A stretch of DNA of 63,950 nt, counting the filler, from Hyphochytrium catenoides (lineage: Eukaryota > Protista > Hyphochytriomycota): assembly GCA_900088475.1 (NCBI GenBank). It is 5 parts of 5 records of this genome, joined end to end, with 100 filler letters (N's around TTAATTAATTAA, not from the genome) between each part and the next. Parts side by side here need not be neighbours in the genome. Positions count along the whole stretch, not along the records: positions 12,664 to 37,375 come from FLMG01004343.1; 4 more parts are not named here. One strand, given 5' to 3'. Positions 25,602 through 37,375 of this stretch are shown here, one piece after another; the stretch's first letter is position 1, and each line of letters begins with the position of its first letter. Under the pieces are notes generated by a model. It was given only the letters and a program-made list of their open reading frames with translations, did not search any database and was not told where the DNA came from. The translations under genes and the position numbers were made by a program.

Positions 25602-28600
25602 CTAGCTAACATTGCTACCCGTTACGCTATGGGGAGCCTTGTACTCTTTCGGCAGTAACGCGCGCTGGAATTTGTTGAACGCAAAAGCCGGCTTCCCAGT
25701 GTTTCTCATGGCGTTGACGATTCTGACCCCGTTGGTCCTCATGACATTTGTAGTCGAGGCGATAGCTGTAGGAGGTAGACCGTGATACTTTGCCAATATC
25801 CTCGCCTGCGAAGTAAGTAAGTCAGTTAGAGCGGTTCGCCGTCTGCGCGATTCATCAAGGAGCAGGGCATTGCCACCTTGGATTTAGAAGGTTGATTACA
25901 GCGGTCTTCCATTGCAAGAACATAAAAGTAGGACTTGGGGTCAAAGACGACCACCAACGGTAGGAAAGAAGGAGCACCAAGATGCAAGAGGTCCATGGCA
26001 CCTACCTGCTCAAAGGTGACGGACATAGAAGTCCTATCCTTAGCACTCTTACAGCAAGTACATCGGCCGGCTCTAATTGACCTGCAGAGGTCTGAGGAAA
26101 GAGTAAGAATCTCTGTTCTCTTCACGTGCACCGTTCGAAGGGCAGCTTCTTGCACAAGGAGAGAAAGAGCCGAGAGCTGCGCTCTAAGCTCTTCTCCTGA
26201 CATTCTAGAATCTTCGTCCTCTTCTCTCTCTCCGGATAGGTCCGCAAGCGACTGAGTGCAATACGAGGAGGAGTTGCGTCAGTTTCAGGGGTGACATCAT
26301 ATGACGACGAAAGGTGACAGAGCCTAAGGCAGATGTGCCTTACCCAAGTAATATACTCCTCAACGTATGAGCTCAACTTTTTAAGGTTAGCGACGTTGAT
26401 TTTGTCCTGGAGCTCGGTGTGCATACCCGAGGCATTCGCAATTGTCTGCATCTCGTTAATCCCTAGAGTCCAAGAAAGGCCGTTGGATCATGAATGCAGA
26501 GCAACATAGCACCAAGCCTCTCCTTGATCATCTCTCTCTACAACTCTAAGTTCTTAGCATATCCTCCTAGAGCATTGTTCCACTCTATTTCCCGCCTCTA
26601 GCTATCTCTACCTCTTTTTGTTACCTTGAGTAAAAATGACAGCCTTAACAGTGATAAGCTCGCCGTCGACCAAGCACTCGGGAAGCAGATGCTCACCGCC
26701 CTCAGTCACGTAGACCTAGAGATCATCTTTAGCTAAAGATAGGAGGGCTATGACAGAAAAAGAAAGCATCAAAATCTACAATGCAAGACTCTTTTACCTT
26801 GACAATATACCCCTTCCGTCCATCATCATTAAGAGTCACCTCAATCGCGGAGGTTCCAGGCCGTACTCCCGGAGGGGAGCGCTACGTGGGAAATAGAAAG
26901 AGTCAGACCTACCCGAACCATGAGCACAGTAGGAAGGTAAGGACCTTAGAGTAGTCAACCACAATCTGGAACTTGCACGCATGTAAGCGCGCCACCGCCG
27001 CCGTCATATCCTCCAGCATTCCGATTTCGTTGCCATGGGTTGAAAGCAAGCTTTCCACCTACGACGGTTGTGAGTATTGAGATGACAGAGGACGATAGAT
27101 GAATAGGGGTTACGCAGTTGTGAGTTTTTGAGGTGATACTTATGCGGACGTGAGGACAGCGATGGGGTTACTGTCGTCGTACGAAGCGGAAAGTAACGGA
27201 GGGAATGGGACAATGGGTGTGGGACTACCTGGAACAGGAATCCAATATCGGCGACTTGACGTGCAAATGGGCTTCGACTGGAACCACCATTGGCTGACTC
27301 TTTTAGGGCGGTATCCAGCTAAGGTAAGGCGTGACGGCGTCCGGCAGAGTAAAGGAGAGCAACAAGACAAAGTAGAGAGGTCAAGCAGAGAACCTACATG
27401 AGCGTTTCGACTTTCAATATCTCTATGGAGTTCAACCCGATGCTCGTACCTCGTTCACGAAGGAGGTTACTAGTGCTGTCAGAGCTTCACAGAAGGACAC
27501 GTCCAAGCGTTGCTAACCAAGGAGAGAGAAGTGATGAGGGATGGACCCCACAGGGGTTTGGCTATTGCAAGGCCATTGGATTTCAAAGATATAAAGGGTA
27601 GAACCCCCCGGAAGGAGGTGTGCAATGAAGGCATCCAGTAGTGAAAGTACATAAAGCTACCTGGATCTCCCTGGTTAGGTCGTCAATTTGCCTCCTCTCT
27701 GGCGTCCACAACCAGCTTTCGCCAATTCCGCTTTGTTCCACCTTCTCAATTAGCTTCTCCTGCGCATCTTGCAGACTCATAACCCCACCTTTGGTGAACT
27801 AGAGACAAAAAATCGTGAAGGTCTATCCAAGGCTATCAAAGCTGAGGAGAAGTGCACCGCAAGTAGAAGCATTTGATAGAATCTGCAGTTTACGTGCTGC
27901 GCAGATGAATATTAGGGATGATAGCGTTCCGAGGTACCTTATAGGCATGAGCACACATGGCTCCGACCGTGACAAAGTGATAGGTGCTCAGTCTTGGACT
28001 CGTTTGCGGCCCCTATGAACGTAACTCAATGTAAAAATGGAGGTTGGATGGTTCTAGATTAGAAAGAAACCATCATTCGCCACGCCGAAGGGTAAGAAGT
28101 CTCCTTCCTTGCCTAGAGTAGAACGTATGTAGAGCAAGAGAGCCACAAAAGTCTCAGAGAGGTCTTTGTCGTTTATACCAGCTTTCCTTTCTCATCCTTA
28201 GGCAGGCAAAAGCTTTGCTTGGTCCCCACCACCATGCTCTGAAGCTGAAGGTTGATAGGAAAGAAACGAAGGGCCCACTCCTTTTTCGCGGTGCTAGGTT
28301 TGAACAGGATACCGTCCTTTTGACGCTGCACGCAGGTCTGAAATCCGGATTTGCAAGTGAAAGGAGACATAAGTGGAGGGCGGCAGATGATGCAACGCAT
28401 TGCAAAATTCAGCGCCAAGTAAGCAAAAAATATGTCGAACTGTAAGATTATGAGATGCGCGGGTGTATACCTGTGAGAGCTCAAGAAGCTTAATTGACCT
28501 ACCTCTTCAACCTCTGACAGTTCTGTTAAGTATTGGTGAAGCTGTTCTACTCTCCTTTGGAGCCATTGTCGGATTGTTTCTATTTCCCTTTCGTCCTGAA

Positions 28601-31600
28601 TTGAGCTCAGGATCAGTTCGTACGGGTTTGGCGATACACTCTGGTAGGAAGAATAAGTGACACATATTGCGTGAGGCACCTCAGATTCCTGTCTCTAAGC
28701 ACTTAGCAAATAGCGTCCTTTCCCTCTCCCGCTGTCCCATTCTCTACTTCTGCGAACTCTTCGGATCCACTTTGTTTCTGTGACCTTGCTTGGACCTTTG
28801 CTGTTCCTCCCTTTTGTCGCTTACCGCCTTTTTCTCCCTTTTCTGTTGCAGAAGAGTGTCGATCTGCCTGTTGAACTCTTCAGCTTCTTTTTCAGCCCTG
28901 ACAAGCTGCTTGGCTCTTGAATATTTCAACAGGCCCACCATTTGCCAGCATACTGAATGGACATAAATACCCTCATTCAACTTCTCTACCACCACTAGAT
29001 CCACACTGGGTGTGGTAGACGGAAGTTGGTAGGCTCTGGAAATGGTGTGAGGGCCTTGAGAAAGTAGCATTGGATGGAGCTTGATCTTTATGGTGGAGTT
29101 GCCTTCAGGAGGAATAAAGCTACCCAGATCACCAGACCCTTCAGCGTGCTGAACATAACATCGCAGAGAGTAAGAGTTTGACTTTAGTTGGCAGAAATTA
29201 AGCATAAGAGTTGGACCTGGGAAAATCCAATCACAAAGTACGTTTAGAGGAGGAGAACGCTACATGAAACAGCTAGAGAACATGAAGCTTGAAAGGTTGA
29301 CTTTACGGAGTGGTTCACACCTCGTGGTTCTTTGATATGAACATTCCTGGTTCTGCTGTTATAATGAGCTCCCCAGCGACGTTGGCAGCCTGGAGAAGGG
29401 CTTGCATAGACACTGAAAACACACACAGCTGCGTCTCCCTGTCGAGTCAAAGAAGTACCCGTACGAGACTAATAAGCAGATGTACCGTAGAACGCTGAGA
29501 ATAAGACTATCAAAAGTGTGGTGACCTCGAGTTCCCACCTTTTAGGAGCAGCAGGAAGTGCTGCTGAGCCACTGGCCGCCTCTGCGGTTGCCTCTACCTC
29601 ATTCCCCAAGCCAGGGGTATCGTAGGGATTTTCCGAGAGGCGAGGGGCTTCGGAGGCCGAGGAGGGTGAAAGATGGGACTGTTCTTCATCTTTGTAAAGA
29701 AGTAACATACGGAGTTAAATGTCACAGATAAAACACTCGCATCAATGGCTTAACCCCATCTTTCCTCAGAAGAACTGCAGATGTAAAAAATTGTGCTGAT
29801 GGAGATAGAAGAGGGACGGATCCGTGCCTTACCAATTACGTATGCTGCTATTTTGACTTCGTACTCGGCATCTTCCGCCGAAACGCCTATCTTCATTACA
29901 GCATTGAATGCCGCGATTAGCTCATCACTCTCTAGGTTGACCATTCCTCTAACTCTCTCTGTGTATGATACGCCAGGAACGAGGTCAGTTTTCCCTTCAT
30001 CCGTGGTGGACTCCTTGCCTCTCTCGTCCACACCGAGTGGTTCGGACGTTCCGGCGATGGCGTCCACGACGCCCGACTTAGATTGAGAGCTGCGTGAAAG
30101 ACGGCTGAAAGAACAAGAATGAATAAGCATAGCTGCATGAGTCCTTTCCAGATACGTGGTTAGAGAAAGGTGTGGACGGATTGGAAAGGGAGACAAGTGT
30201 TACTTTTAAGAGACAGAGCGGTTCAGATATGGCAAGGGAGGTGACTTGGTCGGATTCTACCTTAATTTTGCACTGCCCTCGGTAAGTGGTGCACCGCTCT
30301 TTCTTTCGCTAGTGCGAGAATTAAGTGAAGCCAAGTATCTAATGCCCACTGCAGAGGCGGAAACTCCTCCCTCAGAAACAATTTCCTCATCCGGAAAGCT
30401 GGAGTTCGGAGAAACCGCGGTCAAATAAAGGAGAGCGCTCTCTCCTCCTCTCTCGAAGATACTGCGGTACTTGCTGAAGGGAAGAGAGATGGATGCCATG
30501 ACGTACAGCTCTTTCCTCTCCACTTCCCTCTTGTCAGGCGTCACCTCAAATACTTCCTTCGCCTCCTCAATGGACTCTCTACAACAAAGAACGGCAGGGT
30601 CGCTTATTTTTAGGCAAGCGAGAGATGTTCCACCAACTAATGAAAACCGCAATCCAGAATAGGACCCAAAATAGTGGTTATGGGAAGCCACAACAAGGCG
30701 TGACGGTGATAATGATTACGTAGAAAGAAACGCAGCGCATAATTTGCTAAGGACAACAACTGCTACGGACAACCGCTTTGGACGTTGCCAAAAGAGTGAG
30801 AGACCGGACTGGAGTCTGACGGAGATACTTCTCACCACGCAGCTACCTCTTACCTGCGGGCATAAACATATTTACTGAGCTCTCTCATGGTGTCCTGCAT
30901 CGATATAATATCTGAATTGTTGTCGTCTTCTTCTCCCGCTTTAGATTTAGCTTTCTCTAACGAAGGATGGGCCTCTGGACAGACCGTCAGATATTAGAGG
31001 GAGCGTGCTAGGGTTCTACATATCCGATTTCACGAGCAAGTGTTTACGCATAGGGACCATCCATGGTTCAAAAAAGTGAGCTTGAAAGCGTTGGGGTCAA
31101 GAAATTGGAAGTGAAAATAGTAGCGAATGCTTACCGATAGATTGGTGCATAAAGAGGAAGCATATCGGAGGGATGACATTGGGACTCCAGATAGCCAAAG
31201 TGTACCAGAGCGCCAGAGAGATGGATCCCGCCGGCAGAAGGTGGCAGAGGAAAGACAGGATGTAGACAATAGTAATGGTAGAGATCAGAACATAGTACAT
31301 CAACAGTGCTTGACGGTACTTCTTTCTCAGAGGACCGCATTTAACGGCTTCCAGAGAGGAGATTTTGGAGGTAAAGGCGTTACCCATCTATAGTCGTACA
31401 AGTGTACATGCGAGAGTAATATAGAAGGGCAAGGCGGACAGGAGAAGAGAAAGCGTCAAAAGACGAACGGAGGGTTTCTGTCATCAAGTATACACGTGGA
31501 AGGATAGAATAGGCAGCAGAAGCATGATCTAAAGATGCAAACTTAAGGGGATATGTAGCATGGAGGGAGGGTGGAAGCAGCATCGCCAAGAAAGGAGCAC

Positions 31601-34600
31601 ACATTTCATGTTCCGTTAGCACCTACCACGAACAAAGCGATGGCAGCGATTAGCATGCAAGACAAAGTAACAATGTAGTTCACTCTGTAGTACGGCAAAT
31701 GATGGGCTTCCTCACAGTCATCCCACATCGAGGGCAATTTGTCCAGAATCTCTTGTCCCTCCGCACAGGCGAGGTCGCACGGTAGGGAGGGATCGATGGC
31801 GTAGGTACAGGTAATCACAGAGGACGAGAGAGATGCGTTTAGCACGAGGAAGAGCAAAAGAAGACCCAAGATTCCGCAATAGACATGCTGAAGAGGGCGG
31901 AGGTGCTCTTGCTTGGCGTAGGCAAGGTTTCCCCTGCAAAGAGGTTAGGATGGTAAGATTGCAAGCGGGTAAGAGACCGAGGAGAGGTGCCTCTCAAGTA
32001 GAGACTGTGAGTCCAATACAGAAAGGGTTATGGGACGCACGAACGGGCTAATGGAAAGGTCACCATCAAACTTGATTCAATGAAGTTGGTAAACCATAAA
32101 TGGAAAGAAAATGGACATTGCAGCGCAAGGGCATGGCATGCCTTGCGTCCAGGAAGCTTCAACTGAAGATGACGCAAGCCGTGACACCTACCATTGGAAG
32201 CAGACAGCGTAGATAAGGCCTACGGAACAGAACTGCTGGACGAGGCTAATGTAGTAAGCAATGGTTGAGGGTGAAATAATCCTGGATATGAATGAGACCA
32301 TACGGAAAGGGTGACAAGTAAGTGACTATGACTGCTCCATCAGAGGGCTTGGCTCTCTTGGTAGTTCATCACCAGGGCTCTTTTGCTCATTTAACCAAAA
32401 GTCTCCTTTCCTCCCGTGAGGCCTCTCCCTTCCGTCTCATTCGAGCAGCAATACTGCAAAACAATCTTGTCGCTGTCCAACTAGCTTCCTCCAAAGACTA
32501 GAACTGAATCTCACATTCTTTTCTAATATTTTTTCGTACCACCAAAGGCTTGCTACCAGGCCAGCTCCGAATCCAAGCAATATGCACGCCGAGATGACAT
32601 TTACGAAGAGATTCACCCGTAAGAAGACCAGACGGCTCTGTCAAAAAAATACCAACAAAAGAGAGAAAGAAGCAGCAGATAAGTGAGCCTCAGCTGAAGC
32701 ACTCAGAGATAGGAAGAGAGGACTGGGTTGGTACCGCTGGGCGATACGTGAGATGAGGCAGCACTGCAGAAGAGACGGCGGGGGCATAAGATAGAAGTAT
32801 CACAAGGCAAAGCTGGAGCAAGGGAACCCGCTACACCTGGACGCTGGTAACATTCAACAATCGGGCAGACCAAGTGTTGCGGATCGTATCCCACGGATTC
32901 ATCCTCACTCCCTTTGATCGATTGACCTTACCGTAAGGAAAAGGACAAACGATGTTGCCAGTAGGCAAACAGCATATAAGGCGGCAGATATCCCGCTGAA
33001 GAACCGGGACGTGTATGAATTGGACATTGTCGCTAATAAATAATGAGTTCAGAAGGTAATCGTGATGCAAANAACAACAGGAAGCTCAAGAGTGAAAGGT
33101 GTTAAGAAGGTGACAGCTAGCTTGTAAAATTCTGGCCTTTGCACCTGAAACGAGCACAACATTTGAGCTAACATTCCCGGTCACCAGAAGTGCTCCTTGG
33201 TTAGAGAAGATGTCTACTCCCATTATGGATGGGAGAGAAGAAATAGGGGATGAGGATGGGGATGCCAGAAGGGAACTAGGTCTGGATGGTGTTATGACTT
33301 GGGGAAAGCGGACGGTTAGCCACTGATTTGCGCTCAGGTTGAAGGGCAGATTGAACGAAAGGGTAGTGCCTTCCATCAATCCGCCTTCACCTGCACCTGC
33401 ACCAGATTGGGAGGGTACAACCTTCACCTCCGCTGGGGCTTGTCGGTACGGTTGATCAAACCGTACAGAGGTTACACCTTCAACCTGCGACACGTTAAGC
33501 CACTTAGAGAAAGAGCAAGATATGGAAGAGATTGCACGAAGATACAGCCACTCTCACACGTATGAAACACAAGGAGACTGCGTTTGGTGCCCGAGAGGAG
33601 TATTCCGCAATATTGACAAAGCAGGTACAAGATTAGTGACCACACCGCCTGTGCTCCAGTTCAACCCAGAGTGTCAAGGTCGACGAGTTCAGCAGGATAC
33701 AACCACTATTGCACTTGCCTTCCAGAGGTCTGCGGCGGAAGACTCACGGAATTTGAGGGTAACCGTGCTGTTGACGTCGATGAAGACATCGGATAGCAGT
33801 ATGGAGAGTAAGCCCTCGCAGGTTGTTCCAATGACGTTACTGGTGGCACTCCAAGCCCCCGAACGGATATATGCTAAGGATAGAGGAAAGAGTCAATGCT
33901 GAGCAACACCCTGCGATTGCTGAATCAAGCAGAAAAGTTATCCTTCTGAATGATCAAGGTAACCCAGATTAGCAATCGACAAGGGGGTGACCTAAGGCGG
34001 AGGGAAGATGGTACTGTTCGTGGCAGAACCCCTTCTAGCAATTGGCAACGAAAGCGATACATCAATCGGTACCTGGTTCGACCCTAGCCGTTGAGACGGA
34101 CAGGAACAGCAGAAGGGGTTTACCGTCTATCGATGTGCCTTCCACTGCAGCCAAGCCCTGAAGATTATCACACGAATGAGCGGGGAGGACAGCACACCTT
34201 CGGAAGAATCGAGAGATAAGAGCCCCTGCAAGGAGGCAGTAGCCCGCGAAGGTTGAGCTTTCATAGCTGCTCGGTAAAGCATTGGAGGCAGAGGCGCCCA
34301 TGGTGGTGGAAAATTGGCAGAAAGATAGATAGTGGGACTGAACTCTATGGAAACCAATGACATTAGAAGACAGCGAATGAAGGAAGCTTATTAGCTCACT
34401 CGGCGACCCCCAGAGCCTGTACCTTCTTGGGCCCACCGGGGAGTCTCGGCGCAATGAGATTGTCCACTCTTACAGCAAAACTAGGAGGGTAGGCGCCAAC
34501 CGATCCGACTAACGCCATTGCAAGGGTGTCGTTTGTAAACGAACAGAGGATCTTCAGGCCGTTAACAGGCGGATCCAACGTGCAGCTCCGTTCAAAGTCA

Positions 34601-36536
34601 AACTCTACGCCGCAGCGGAGGATCGATGGGAAGCAACGAAAACAGACAGGCGAGGGTGAGGCCGGATGGTACACTGCCCCCACACGACCAGCATTATCAT
34701 GACTATTAGAGAACACAAGCAGCAATAAAGCTCAAACCCTAGGACCTTGGAAGAACCAATCTCTCCACCTGTTGTTCTATTCCAATTGGGGAGGCTGAAG
34801 ACCGCTTGTACGTCCTTGCTGACGGCCGGGAAGTTTCTTGAAAGAACTAGAAGAAGGAGTGAATTCGGTTAAGAGGAGAGTACCTAGTGTCCGATGAGCG
34901 GTAGAATGGAAGGCGAGGCCGACAAAGACAGCAAGATATAAAGCCTAGGAGGCACCTAACTAGGAGGGAAGTTTGCAATACAGAGATTAAGAGACGACAA
35001 CGAGAGTGAGAGGAAGAACAAGAGGATAATAAGAAATAAGCGAACCTTCTTGGAAGTAGAATTTAGCAGTAGTGCCGCTGCCTGGCACGAAAGTTTGGTG
35101 TCCCAGAGGCTCGATGGCGAATGCTGAGATGTTGGACGGCAACACGGGCTCATAGGTGTAGCTTGAGCATGGTCCGCCTGTTCAAGAGTTTTAGAAAGAA
35201 TTATCTTCCGTAAACATGAGAGAGCCCTCTTATTATACTGCTACTCAGTCTTATCCTTGCTACACTTGCTTTCTCTGTTACCATTAAACTACAAGGACGA
35301 ATGTTACTCCTTCTCTAAAGTAGGCTTCTGCTCCGTCTCTCTTATCTTTCGCCAATATCGTCTGTACTTAGCTACGCACCGTAGGCTGTTCGGCAGTCTT
35401 GTGAAGACATCCAAGTCAATGGCTGTTGCGCCTCGCAAAGTATGGGCCTACATTGGTCCACAGAGGCATAGGAGCTGAAGACAACCGCAGGCAACGTATG
35501 AGGCCTAGCACTGTGAGATTATAACTTGAGATAACAATATGACAAAACTGACATTGCGTTGGTTCCCTTATCTAGTAGAACCCAGTGAGGTGTCCCATCA
35601 CTGGCAGGGAGGCACTTGGCGGTATCAAAGGGTAGAGAAAAGGAATCTGCAAGCGTGGTTAAGATTAGGGCAAGCGTGGTTAAGATTAGAGCAAGCGATG
35701 TGCATTCCCTCAGGACAAAGAGATTCGCTGGAGGACAGCAGGGAGACAAAAGTAGGATGAAATGAAGAGGTTCACTAGACAGGACGGATCAGAGAACAAG
35801 AGGGTAGAGTAGTCGGATGATAGTGAAGAGGCCAACCTATTAACGTAAGCTCAAAGCCATCGGAAGAGCCAGAGGCCTGTCTGAAAAGAGGTGACAACGG
35901 ACCCACTTCGAGACGGACGCCTAAACCCAATGGAAGGGAAGGGCGTGACAGACAGAGATTGTGAGAGTGAAAGCGAGAGTAAGAGAGGAGAGAAAACACC
36001 GAGAAATCGGGACAAGGACTGAAGGGGTTACGTATGCATAAGGCTGAGAGGAAGGTGGGGCGCCAAAGGAGACGAGTCTGCAGCAGAAAGCCAAGCGAGA
36101 GGAAAGTCCAGCCGGGTTATCCTAGTAACTAGTGTTATGTCGGACCTGCTGTCTCAGAGCAGAGGGTGGGGTTTGCACTGAGAGGTCCTACTTCGTCTTG
36201 AAAGCTTGACAAAGAGGAAAGAGCACTATTGTCGCCTTCGGTTTGATCCTCTATTGCCGCCTGTACAAGCCAGTGAACCCCTCTTCTGGCTTTAGGCTTT
36301 GCTATTCCAGTCTCTTTGGTTCTTCTAGCATCGTCATCTAGGCTAAGGAACTGTCTCCTTTTCTCTCTACGGAGAGCTTCACTGTGAAGAGAATTGGGGC
36401 TAAGCGAACGGTCTGCTGTACTTTGCCAGGGAATCTGCCGTTCAGTATGCCGTTCATACCCGCCAGTCCGGGTAGCCGCCACGTTGGACTGGCAGACCAC
36501 CAGGCCGGTCAGCAGAAGGCTTATCAGTTGCTTCAT
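25602..36536 (-). CDS. Signal peptide + large ectodomain + 7TM + inositol polyphosphate 4-phosphatase (INPP4) fusion protein
   Basis: Start [17 protein letters not shown] at 36536. 7TM exons 33032-32932, 32637-32540, 32281-32192, 31933-31627, 31387-31135. Linker exons 30974-30854, 30578-30261 and onward join with matching phase. INPP4 motifs: [71 protein letters not shown], catalytic [16 protein letters not shown] (26053-26030), [41 protein letters not shown]4 identity is near certain; the single-gene model rests on manual splicing. Confidence 0.82.
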
Positions 36537-37375
36537 AATGTTTTCCTCTCAGTATTCGCACTCGGAAACAGTCCCATAGCAAACATGAGTTTTCTATAGG
36601 AGTAAGGGTCTTGGAGAGCTAAAGGGAAAGCTCGCACTATAGAATAACTGCGAGGGCCTAACTTGGCCAAGCTGGAGAAGATGCAGGACTCCCCGCCCGC
36701 ATAGAAACGTTCAGCATAGAGCTCCTTAGCTGCTGGTTGCTGTTGCTAGCGCATGTAAGGGTACCTTATACTCTATTGAGGCACAATCTCCATGCTCAGG
36801 CCGGCTGGCTGTTGACCTTCAGTTCACATCATCACCGAAGGGCAAATTGCCCACTCTCGCGTCGGTTCGCATCTCCATTTTTGAAGTGTCGGAGGGGATT
36901 TCTGAGGGTCTTTGGCAAACAGATCTCAATCTGTCCTTCACTCCTCTCTATCAGCCTGTGTTATGTATTTCTCATCTCTCTCTTCTCTCCTCTGTCAATC
37001 TACATAGTTCTCTTTTACTTTTACGCAGTATTTCTCTTACCTCTTTCGCCCACTCTGTCTCTCTACATACTCATCTCTCTCAACTCTTTCTTGCAGCACC
37101 ACAGATTGTATCGTACTTCTTGTTCTTTGGTGCGACCATCATCGTCAGTGTTCGCTCTCCCAGATTCTGATCCCTGAAGATCCTTGGCAATGATGAGGAG
37201 TTGAAGTCTGGTTTAGAGCTCCAGGGAAGTACGCGAAGGCCCGTCTGATTGTCTCATCAGTACCACTTAGAAGCAGTTGTTCTTGCTAGCCTCTTTGACA
37301 TTTCATCGACATTTGTTGCCAAAGGATACCCCTTCTCATTCCCTTGAGCGAAACGGTGTCCAGTAGCTGTAGCGG

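Follow-up and report, generated by a model that had tools for sequence, protein, structure and literature searches.

Within the window, by which we mean the whole 63,950-nucleotide stretch of DNA analyzed here, one piece (FLMG01004343.1, positions 12664–37375) carries on its minus strand what we read as a single gene, running from about 36536 to 25602 in at least 28 exons. It would encode a member of the GPCR-INPP 'bigram' family, in which a bundle of seven transmembrane helices (7TM), like that of G-protein-coupled receptors (GPCRs), is joined to an INPP4-type phosphoinositide phosphatase. We regard it as highly likely that one gene here specifies a receptor with a probable ectodomain, a 7TM bundle, a linker and an INPP4 core.

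A preliminary description of the locus had listed seven minus-strand exons, namely the five helix exons and the first two linker exons given below, and had claimed that their junctions are GT–AG with matching phase. Our check of the sequence bore this out. Each of the seven is preceded by AG and followed by GT, and together they splice into 1288 bases with one stop-free frame that contains all seven of the hydrophobic segments quoted earlier. The described stop at 25602 is likewise present, as is ATG 36536, which opens a signal-peptide-like sequence. We curated 15 further exons by hand, down to the stop, using three-frame displays and homology. The resulting model has 22 exons, all bounded by GT–AG, and reads in one frame through 1160 residues, from just upstream of helix 1 to the C-terminus. 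Its introns measure 63–420 nt, and this helix-to-stop part of the gene spans 7.4 kb with at least 21 introns. Ab initio gene finding, whether by codon usage alone or with homology bonuses added, was set aside for hand curation: its ectodomain exons were unstable and its INPP4 exons extended too far.

Five exons carry the helices. A family profile built from nine oomycete-type 7TM-INPP4 proteins, from helix 1 to the C-terminus, aligns in order to these five and then to the INPP4 exons; on helices 1 and 2 its scores are weak, at the correct positions. The helix 1 exon (33032–32932, acceptor score 2.8) covers profile positions 6–32 and includes an alternative start, ATG 33027, and the helix 2 exon (32637–32540) covers positions 43–70. 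The helix 3 exon (32281–32192; independent E-value (i-E) 0.0018) ends in CFQW, the counterpart of the family motif CFHW. One exon (31933–31627; i-E 0.029) encodes helices 4 and 5 together with extracellular loop 2, which is acidic and rich in Cys, and the next holds a basic intracellular loop 3 with helices 6 and 7 (31387–31135; i-E 3.4e-14). Three charged linker exons (30974–30854, 30578–30261 and 30089–29833), again GT–AG and in frame, lead into the INPP4 core. Its exons were placed by homology, the first six at 29412–29321, 29148–28825, 28640–28503, 28337–28179, 28012–27938 and 27798–27661, and the next six at 27512–27450, 27318–27229, 27058–26945, 26881–26798, 26715–26625 and 26462–26344; the boundaries of 29412–29321 and at 26945/26881 are the least certain. 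The catalytic exon (26251–26006; i-E 2e-27) holds the P-loop CKSAKDRT, and the last exon (25805–25602; i-E 4.7e-31) ends with the stop codon at 25604–25602. The CKSAKDR phosphatase motif, reported earlier for this locus and located here in the catalytic exon, is the sole C-x5-R in the 1160-residue product. Since the profile maps collinearly onto exactly these exons, the exon pattern exceeds what chance would give.

The evidence that the helices and the phosphatase belong to one protein comes from relatives. Using the 82-residue catalytic exon as query, we searched exhaustively with HMMER and obtained 217 proteins. Many of the top matches are 1300–1960 residues long and have about seven clustered hydrophobic helices after 250–560 N-terminal residues, with CKSAKDR about 80 residues from the C-terminus. 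Those with names come from the oomycetes Pythium oligandrum, Aphanomyces astaci, Albugo candida and Thraustotheca clavata, and others are metagenome proteins. When oomycete proteins were compared with the window by tblastn, they matched the exon of helices 6 and 7 (E-values to 7e-11) and then, collinearly, the INPP4 exons. Conversely, the spliced product aligns with the same oomycete proteins over residues 10–300 on the helix bundle and 580–1159 on INPP4, with a whole-protein E-value of about 1e-126; for the Thraustotheca protein, the match to the window is confined to the INPP4 part. A phmmer search with the 300-residue 7TM part alone found 28 family proteins in the local set, with E-values to 5e-20, and no others. 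Two metagenome relatives (P0002 and P0006) are uninterrupted open reading frames (ORFs) on their contigs, so the fusion exists as a single polypeptide in kin of the window's gene. With the collinear profile, both domains matching the same proteins and in-frame GT–AG joins between them, the earlier claim that the 7TM and INPP4 parts form one gene is supported, and on these comparisons the fusion is very probably real.

A relative in a soil metagenome (2024, 10-kb contig) is about 2.5% diverged from the window over 31000–31707. It shows 3 differences in 334 exon bases versus 15 in 374 intron bases (Fisher p 0.008), and the exon differences amount to two loop substitutions and no frameshifts. Judged from this relative, the helix exons are under purifying selection. 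Its contig runs on through the INPP4 part of the gene.

The topology of the bundle can be predicted from its loops. In the window's protein, Lys and Arg residues number 10 in the predicted inner loops versus 2 in the outer ones, with four Cys and nine acidic residues in outer loop 2. The loop charges place the N-terminus outside and the C-terminus inside, whether or not an ectodomain precedes helix 1, and the phosphatase is thereby predicted to lie in the cytosol, as the preliminary description had proposed. We modeled the helix bundle of the closest homologue with AlphaFold2 (AF2), using an alignment that included the window exons; the model has a predicted local distance difference test score (pLDDT) of 84.5 and a predicted template modeling score of 0.83. 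In a Foldseek search with this model, the top 50 PDB matches were all GPCRs, mostly with template modeling scores of 0.45–0.57. The best of them, with scores of about 0.5–0.58 and E-values of about 1e-3, included the beta-1 adrenergic, CB1, mu-opioid and S1P1 receptors, LGR4/5, a Dictyostelium mGluR-like receptor and PTH1R, and were spread across several GPCR classes with none preferred. The modeling indicates a generic GPCR fold for the seven helices. A Pfam scan of ten window frames and seven homologues gave a sole match, to THH1/TOM1/TOM3, in one unrelated fusion.

The last ~470–560 residues of the product align with INPP4 of Thecamonas and Mastigamoeba at E-values of 5e-46 to 7e-58, and the UniRef name of the oomycete relatives is inositol-3,4-bisphosphate 4-phosphatase. 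Animal INPP4A and INPP4B have a homologous core with the identical P-loop CKSAKDRT, but these are soluble enzymes whose recruitment depends on an N-terminal C2 domain, whereas in the window's protein the seven helices stand in its place. Pfam detected no C2 domain in the linker exons, a scan of limited sensitivity because single exons were used, and the ~300 charged residues between helix 7 and the INPP4 core have no detectable homology. A sequence search of PDB with the catalytic exon found no INPP4 structure. The phosphatase had been called an intact INPP4. This description fits the ~560-residue core and its P-loop; it does not extend to a C2 domain or to the ~300 residues that follow helix 7. 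In the predicted protein, a charged cytosolic linker of ~300 residues would separate the seven-helix bundle from an INPP4-type core of ~560 residues with an intact CKSAKDR, and the seven-helix anchor would replace the C2 domain of animal INPP4 in membrane targeting.

Upstream of helix 1 we searched for exons of an ectodomain. A putative first exon (36536–36460, minus strand) opens at ATG 36536 with the signal-peptide-like start and closes at a donor CGG|GTATGA scoring 4.2. It is followed by a putative ectodomain region (36381–33145, minus strand) in which the exons 36381–36192, 34585–34423, 34157–34073 and 33390/33502–33145 are stable in most settings; the last of these, proximal to the membrane, has three N-x-S/T sequons. 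Our coding model, in leave-one-out tests on the curated exons, ranked the true frame best in 18 of 22 and scored introns positive in 3 of 21. In open frames its score has local peaks at about 36.5, 36.3, 34.55, 34.15, 33.85 and 33.45 kb. We then ran a dynamic-programming path search, with splice-site thresholds taken from the 21 curated introns and any ATG permitted. The best spliced path into the helix 1 exon runs through seven exons from 36536 and reaches a score of 21.1, a value that none of 150 shuffles attained (mean -0.9, standard deviation 3.2, maximum 13.8). Because shuffling would also destroy the exons of any separate upstream gene, this test speaks for a coding, spliceable strand and not for the last junction itself. 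In a protein-language-model (Atlas) search, frame 33146–33553 gave first matches at 0.94, a level reached by 4–10% of shuffled proteins, and its look-alikes are immunoglobulin-like or beta-sandwich models; a second candidate ectodomain frame reached only 0.70. Among relatives, the Thraustotheca protein and one metagenomic protein have clear signal peptides.

We consider it likely that the ectodomain is part of this gene, and a signal peptide and ectodomain of the window's own are probable. The extracellular N-terminus would then consist of a signal peptide, probably cleaved, followed by a glycosylated, beta-rich ectodomain some few hundred residues long. The preliminary description had claimed both: the ATG and signal-like start are there, whereas the ectodomain, for which it gave no exon coordinates, is unconfirmed and has ORF lengths within chance.

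Some smaller features lie in the same region. A GA/CT-rich low-complexity tract at 35930–35986 marks the place where the contigs of both strains break, and a 21-base tandem repeat in 2.3 copies occupies 35649–35697; a long intron, the first or the second, probably contains both. At 35802 a single base is deleted in one strain. If coding, the putative exon 36381–36192 would give a very basic and acidic stretch after the signal peptide with the dibasic clusters RREKRR and KPKARR, and it is pure speculation that these resemble a pro-peptide processing site.

The closest known systems are the GPCR-INPPs of oomycetes, a bigram class published in 2018 by van den Hoogen et al. (PMC5784254). Its authors found one to nine GPCR-INPPs per oomycete and, beyond oomycetes, such proteins just in Nannochloropsis gaditana. 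Members include TMW66408.1 (Pythium oligandrum), XP_009823688.1 (Aphanomyces astaci), CCI42800.1 (Albugo candida) and OQS04987.1 (Thraustotheca clavata). They share with the window's gene the order of an N-terminal extracellular region, which in the window is probable, then seven helices, a linker and an INPP4 core with CKSAKDR; homology to the window extends to both domains in the Pythium, Aphanomyces and Albugo proteins. Also shared are CFHW/CFQW, Cys in outer loop 2 and the helix 7 pattern WY..W.P...PP...LF. The window's gene differs in its putative ectodomain sequence, which has no detectable similarity to theirs, and, compared with the intron-free ORFs of P0002 and P0006, in its at least 21 introns. 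The kinship suggested earlier is thus supported by shared domains, shared motifs and a well-supported INPP4 clade, and by sequence the gene is a divergent member of the described GPCR-INPP class. The suggestion that its large ectodomain might represent an undescribed version found no support. In ten of the 11 representatives of the clade, helix 1 is preceded by 250–560 residues; the gene model of the eleventh is truncated. A long extracellular N-terminus therefore recurs regularly among the closest oomycete members and would not be new in the window, even if it goes unmentioned in the passages searched on GPCR-INPPs.

How might such a protein work? A ligand or contact cue perceived by the ectodomain and helix bundle would alter the activity of the phosphatase or its access to substrate. 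The phosphatase would strip the 4-phosphate of PI(3,4)P2, or of a related 4-phosphoinositide, from the inner leaflet at the receptor. Sensing would thereby be coupled to phosphoinositide turnover, with a G protein not obligatory. A precedent exists in the voltage-sensing phosphatase Ci-VSP, whose transmembrane sensor exerts direct control over the cytosolic CX5R phosphoinositide phosphatase to which it is fused; there the sensor is a voltage sensor of four helices, the phosphatase is PTEN-like, and the protein is unrelated in sequence. The earlier idea of a G-protein-independent one-component sensor matches an inference published for the class, since the authors of the 2018 paper speculated that GPCR-INPPs bypass G proteins and form a cycle with GPCR-PIPKs (PMC5784254), a proposal repeated in a 2018 review (PMC6033456). 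GPCR-PIPKs themselves (Dictyostelium RpkA, Phytophthora GK4/GK5) are likewise seven-helix receptors with a cytosolic phosphoinositide-metabolizing enzyme for which direct coupling has been proposed (PMC5784254, PMC3206951). They are likened here by domain layout; their enzyme is a kinase, and they have genetic phenotypes, whereas none is reported for GPCR-INPPs.

In another arrangement the bundle would be no switch. It might merely anchor a constitutively active phosphatase, or signal in the usual way through G proteins beside a phosphatase that works independently. The recruitment of animal INPP4 would agree with this, since all it requires is C2-mediated attachment to the membrane. The long unconserved linker points in the same direction, as does the lack of a conserved coupling element like the LRxGI motif of GPCR-PIPKs (PMC5784254). 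On the other hand, helices 6 and 7 and the loops are the best-conserved receptor parts in the family, and the ectodomain is kept in 10 of the 10 clade representatives with a complete N-terminus. Such conservation and retention exceed the needs of a plain anchor, and we consider the arrangement without a switch less likely.

For the reading of one gene encoding a sensor with its own ectodomain, several observations have to be set on the opposing side. Splicing is deduced from DNA and homology, that is, from comparative evidence. Functional data or assays on GPCR-INPPs are absent from the literature searched (PMC5784254, PMC6033456), papers of later date included. The class A coupling motifs DRY and NPxxY are absent from the family, which has CFHW (CFQW in the window) at the DRY position and WY..VWLP...PP...LFLQWN in helix 7 at the position of NPxxY. 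The remaining points concern the ectodomain. Its exon chain is putative and varies with settings. Searches of the oomycete ectodomains against that of the window by hidden Markov model, phmmer and hhalign gave no significant similarity; hhalign to P0006 reached an E-value of 0.006 with a probability of 6%, a weak match at the equivalent membrane-proximal position. The donor leading to the helix 1 exon, CAG|GTGCAA at 33145, scores 3.0, in the 90th percentile of GT sites and at the low end of true donors, and has GTG versus GTA in 19 of the 21 curated donors. Finally, ATG 33027 lies nine codons before helix 1 in a good context (A at -3); were the exon unspliced, a stop in the same frame would lie eight codons upstream.

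Open-frame length was rejected as evidence for the ectodomain. Its longest ORF has 155 codons versus a mean of 131 in dinucleotide shuffles, 18% of which reach 155. From 33.1 to 36.5 kb the minus strand is pyrimidine-rich, and stop codons are scarce in all frames; on the plus strand, GC skew rises to +0.17 and AT skew is about +0.2 over 30600–36600. Since introns and exons alike share this composition, open-frame lengths are inflated in all three frames, and Leu-rich signal-peptide-like starts arise easily. An AF2 model of the single membrane-proximal frame was uninformative (pLDDT 41.6), and strain single-nucleotide polymorphisms in the region were too few to fix frames.

Taken together, the points on the ectodomain would suit two genes in place of one, with the 7TM-INPP4 gene starting at ATG 33027 and having a 10-residue extracellular N-terminus. 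The upstream stretch, 36536–33086, would then be a separate secreted-protein gene or mere non-coding DNA. That other INPP4 fusions, those of the THH1/TOM1 type, have no ectodomain also agrees with this division. Spacing argues against it. Frame 33553–33089 ends about 60 nt before ATG 33027, a gap too short for a gene boundary with a 3′ end and a promoter; gene spacers elsewhere in the piece measure 0.2–1.2 kb. Moreover, the ten closest representatives with a complete N-terminus all have at least 250 residues before helix 1, the best path with any ATG allowed starts at 36536 and beats 150 of 150 shuffles, and the membrane-proximal frame has its Atlas score of 0.94. We therefore judge the two-gene arrangement improbable and retain a single gene with its own ectodomain. 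That the 7TM and INPP4 parts are separate neighboring genes, joined by fortuitous in-frame GT–AG sites across 31135–30261, could appeal to a ~300-residue linker without homology to anything and to methionines in exon 30974–30854 able to start a protein, but it is very hard to credit, since both domains are homologous, in the same order, to the two domains of single-ORF relatives, the frame is kept at all three linker junctions, and no polyadenylation hexamer (AATAAA or ATTAAA) occurs in the intron after helix 7 (31134–30975).

The combination of membrane helices with INPP4 is not confined to this class. A second oomycete type, found also in Cantina marsupialis, has a THH1/TOM1/TOM3-like bundle (Pfam PF06454). 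Examples are Pythium TMW67121.1 and Phytophthora cactorum KAG2765657.1; the type was seen in proteins of Pythium, Albugo and Phytophthora (P0067, P0075, P0035, P0183) and of C. marsupialis (P0058). Like the window's protein, these have seven helices and a C-terminal INPP4 with CKSAKDR, but their bundle is unrelated (no match from the window's 7TM part), they have no ectodomain, and they form their own INPP4 clade. In the amoebozoan Mastigamoeba balamuthi (P0088) and the basal stramenopile Platysulcus tardus (P0098), INPP4 proteins carry about six hydrophobic helices at the N-terminus. Their helices show no similarity to either oomycete helix bundle, and the two proteins are possibly further independent fusions of membrane domains with INPP4. 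The distribution of membrane-INPP4 proteins is wider than published.

A maximum-likelihood tree built on the INPP4 part unites the window's protein with 11 representatives of the ectodomain type in a clade (SH-aLRT, an approximate likelihood-ratio support, 99). Within it, the window's protein is sister to all 11 (support 88) and lies outside the split into two oomycete paralogue groups. Among the 15 billion sequences that the searched library represents, even the closest protein is at most ~45% identical over 260–300 residues and ~40% over the INPP4 core, which indicates a lineage not represented in protein databases. The stretch itself is present in DNA runs of 2011 and 2017, and it or a near relative in two soil metagenomes. 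Further searches for clues to the host came back empty: an exon of the neighboring BEACH gene, a metagenome locus scan with the helix 6–7 exon and Rfam gave no matches, and upstream there is no conserved small gene. From the sister position, the at least 21 introns and the identity of at most ~45%, the host is likely a non-oomycete or a very deep-branching one. A more specific candidate is a lineage of stramenopiles, or of other protists, that falls outside the oomycetes and is missing from protein databases. An oomycete sister group such as a hyphochytrid would fit, which is a guess.

On the same piece, the minus strand from 12664 to about 24400 holds a gene for a BEACH-domain protein, with many short exons, which runs off the lower edge of the piece.

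This divergent member, sister to the oomycete clade as a whole, is of help in dating the fusion and shows which receptor residues are conserved, namely the end of helix 3, a Cys in outer loop 2 and the motifs of helices 6 and 7. If the host does lie outside the oomycetes, the receptor with ectodomain, 7TM bundle and INPP4 would predate the oomycete radiation. Together with the THH1/TOM1-type proteins and those of Platysulcus and Mastigamoeba, this would mean that INPP4 joined multi-pass membrane domains several times independently, which would speak for direct coupling of a receptor to a 4-phosphatase as a selected signaling design and no oomycete oddity. We give this wider reading a little under even odds. 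The gene leaves the concept of the class unchanged and adds to the organisms in which PI(3,4)P2 might be the direct target of a receptor.

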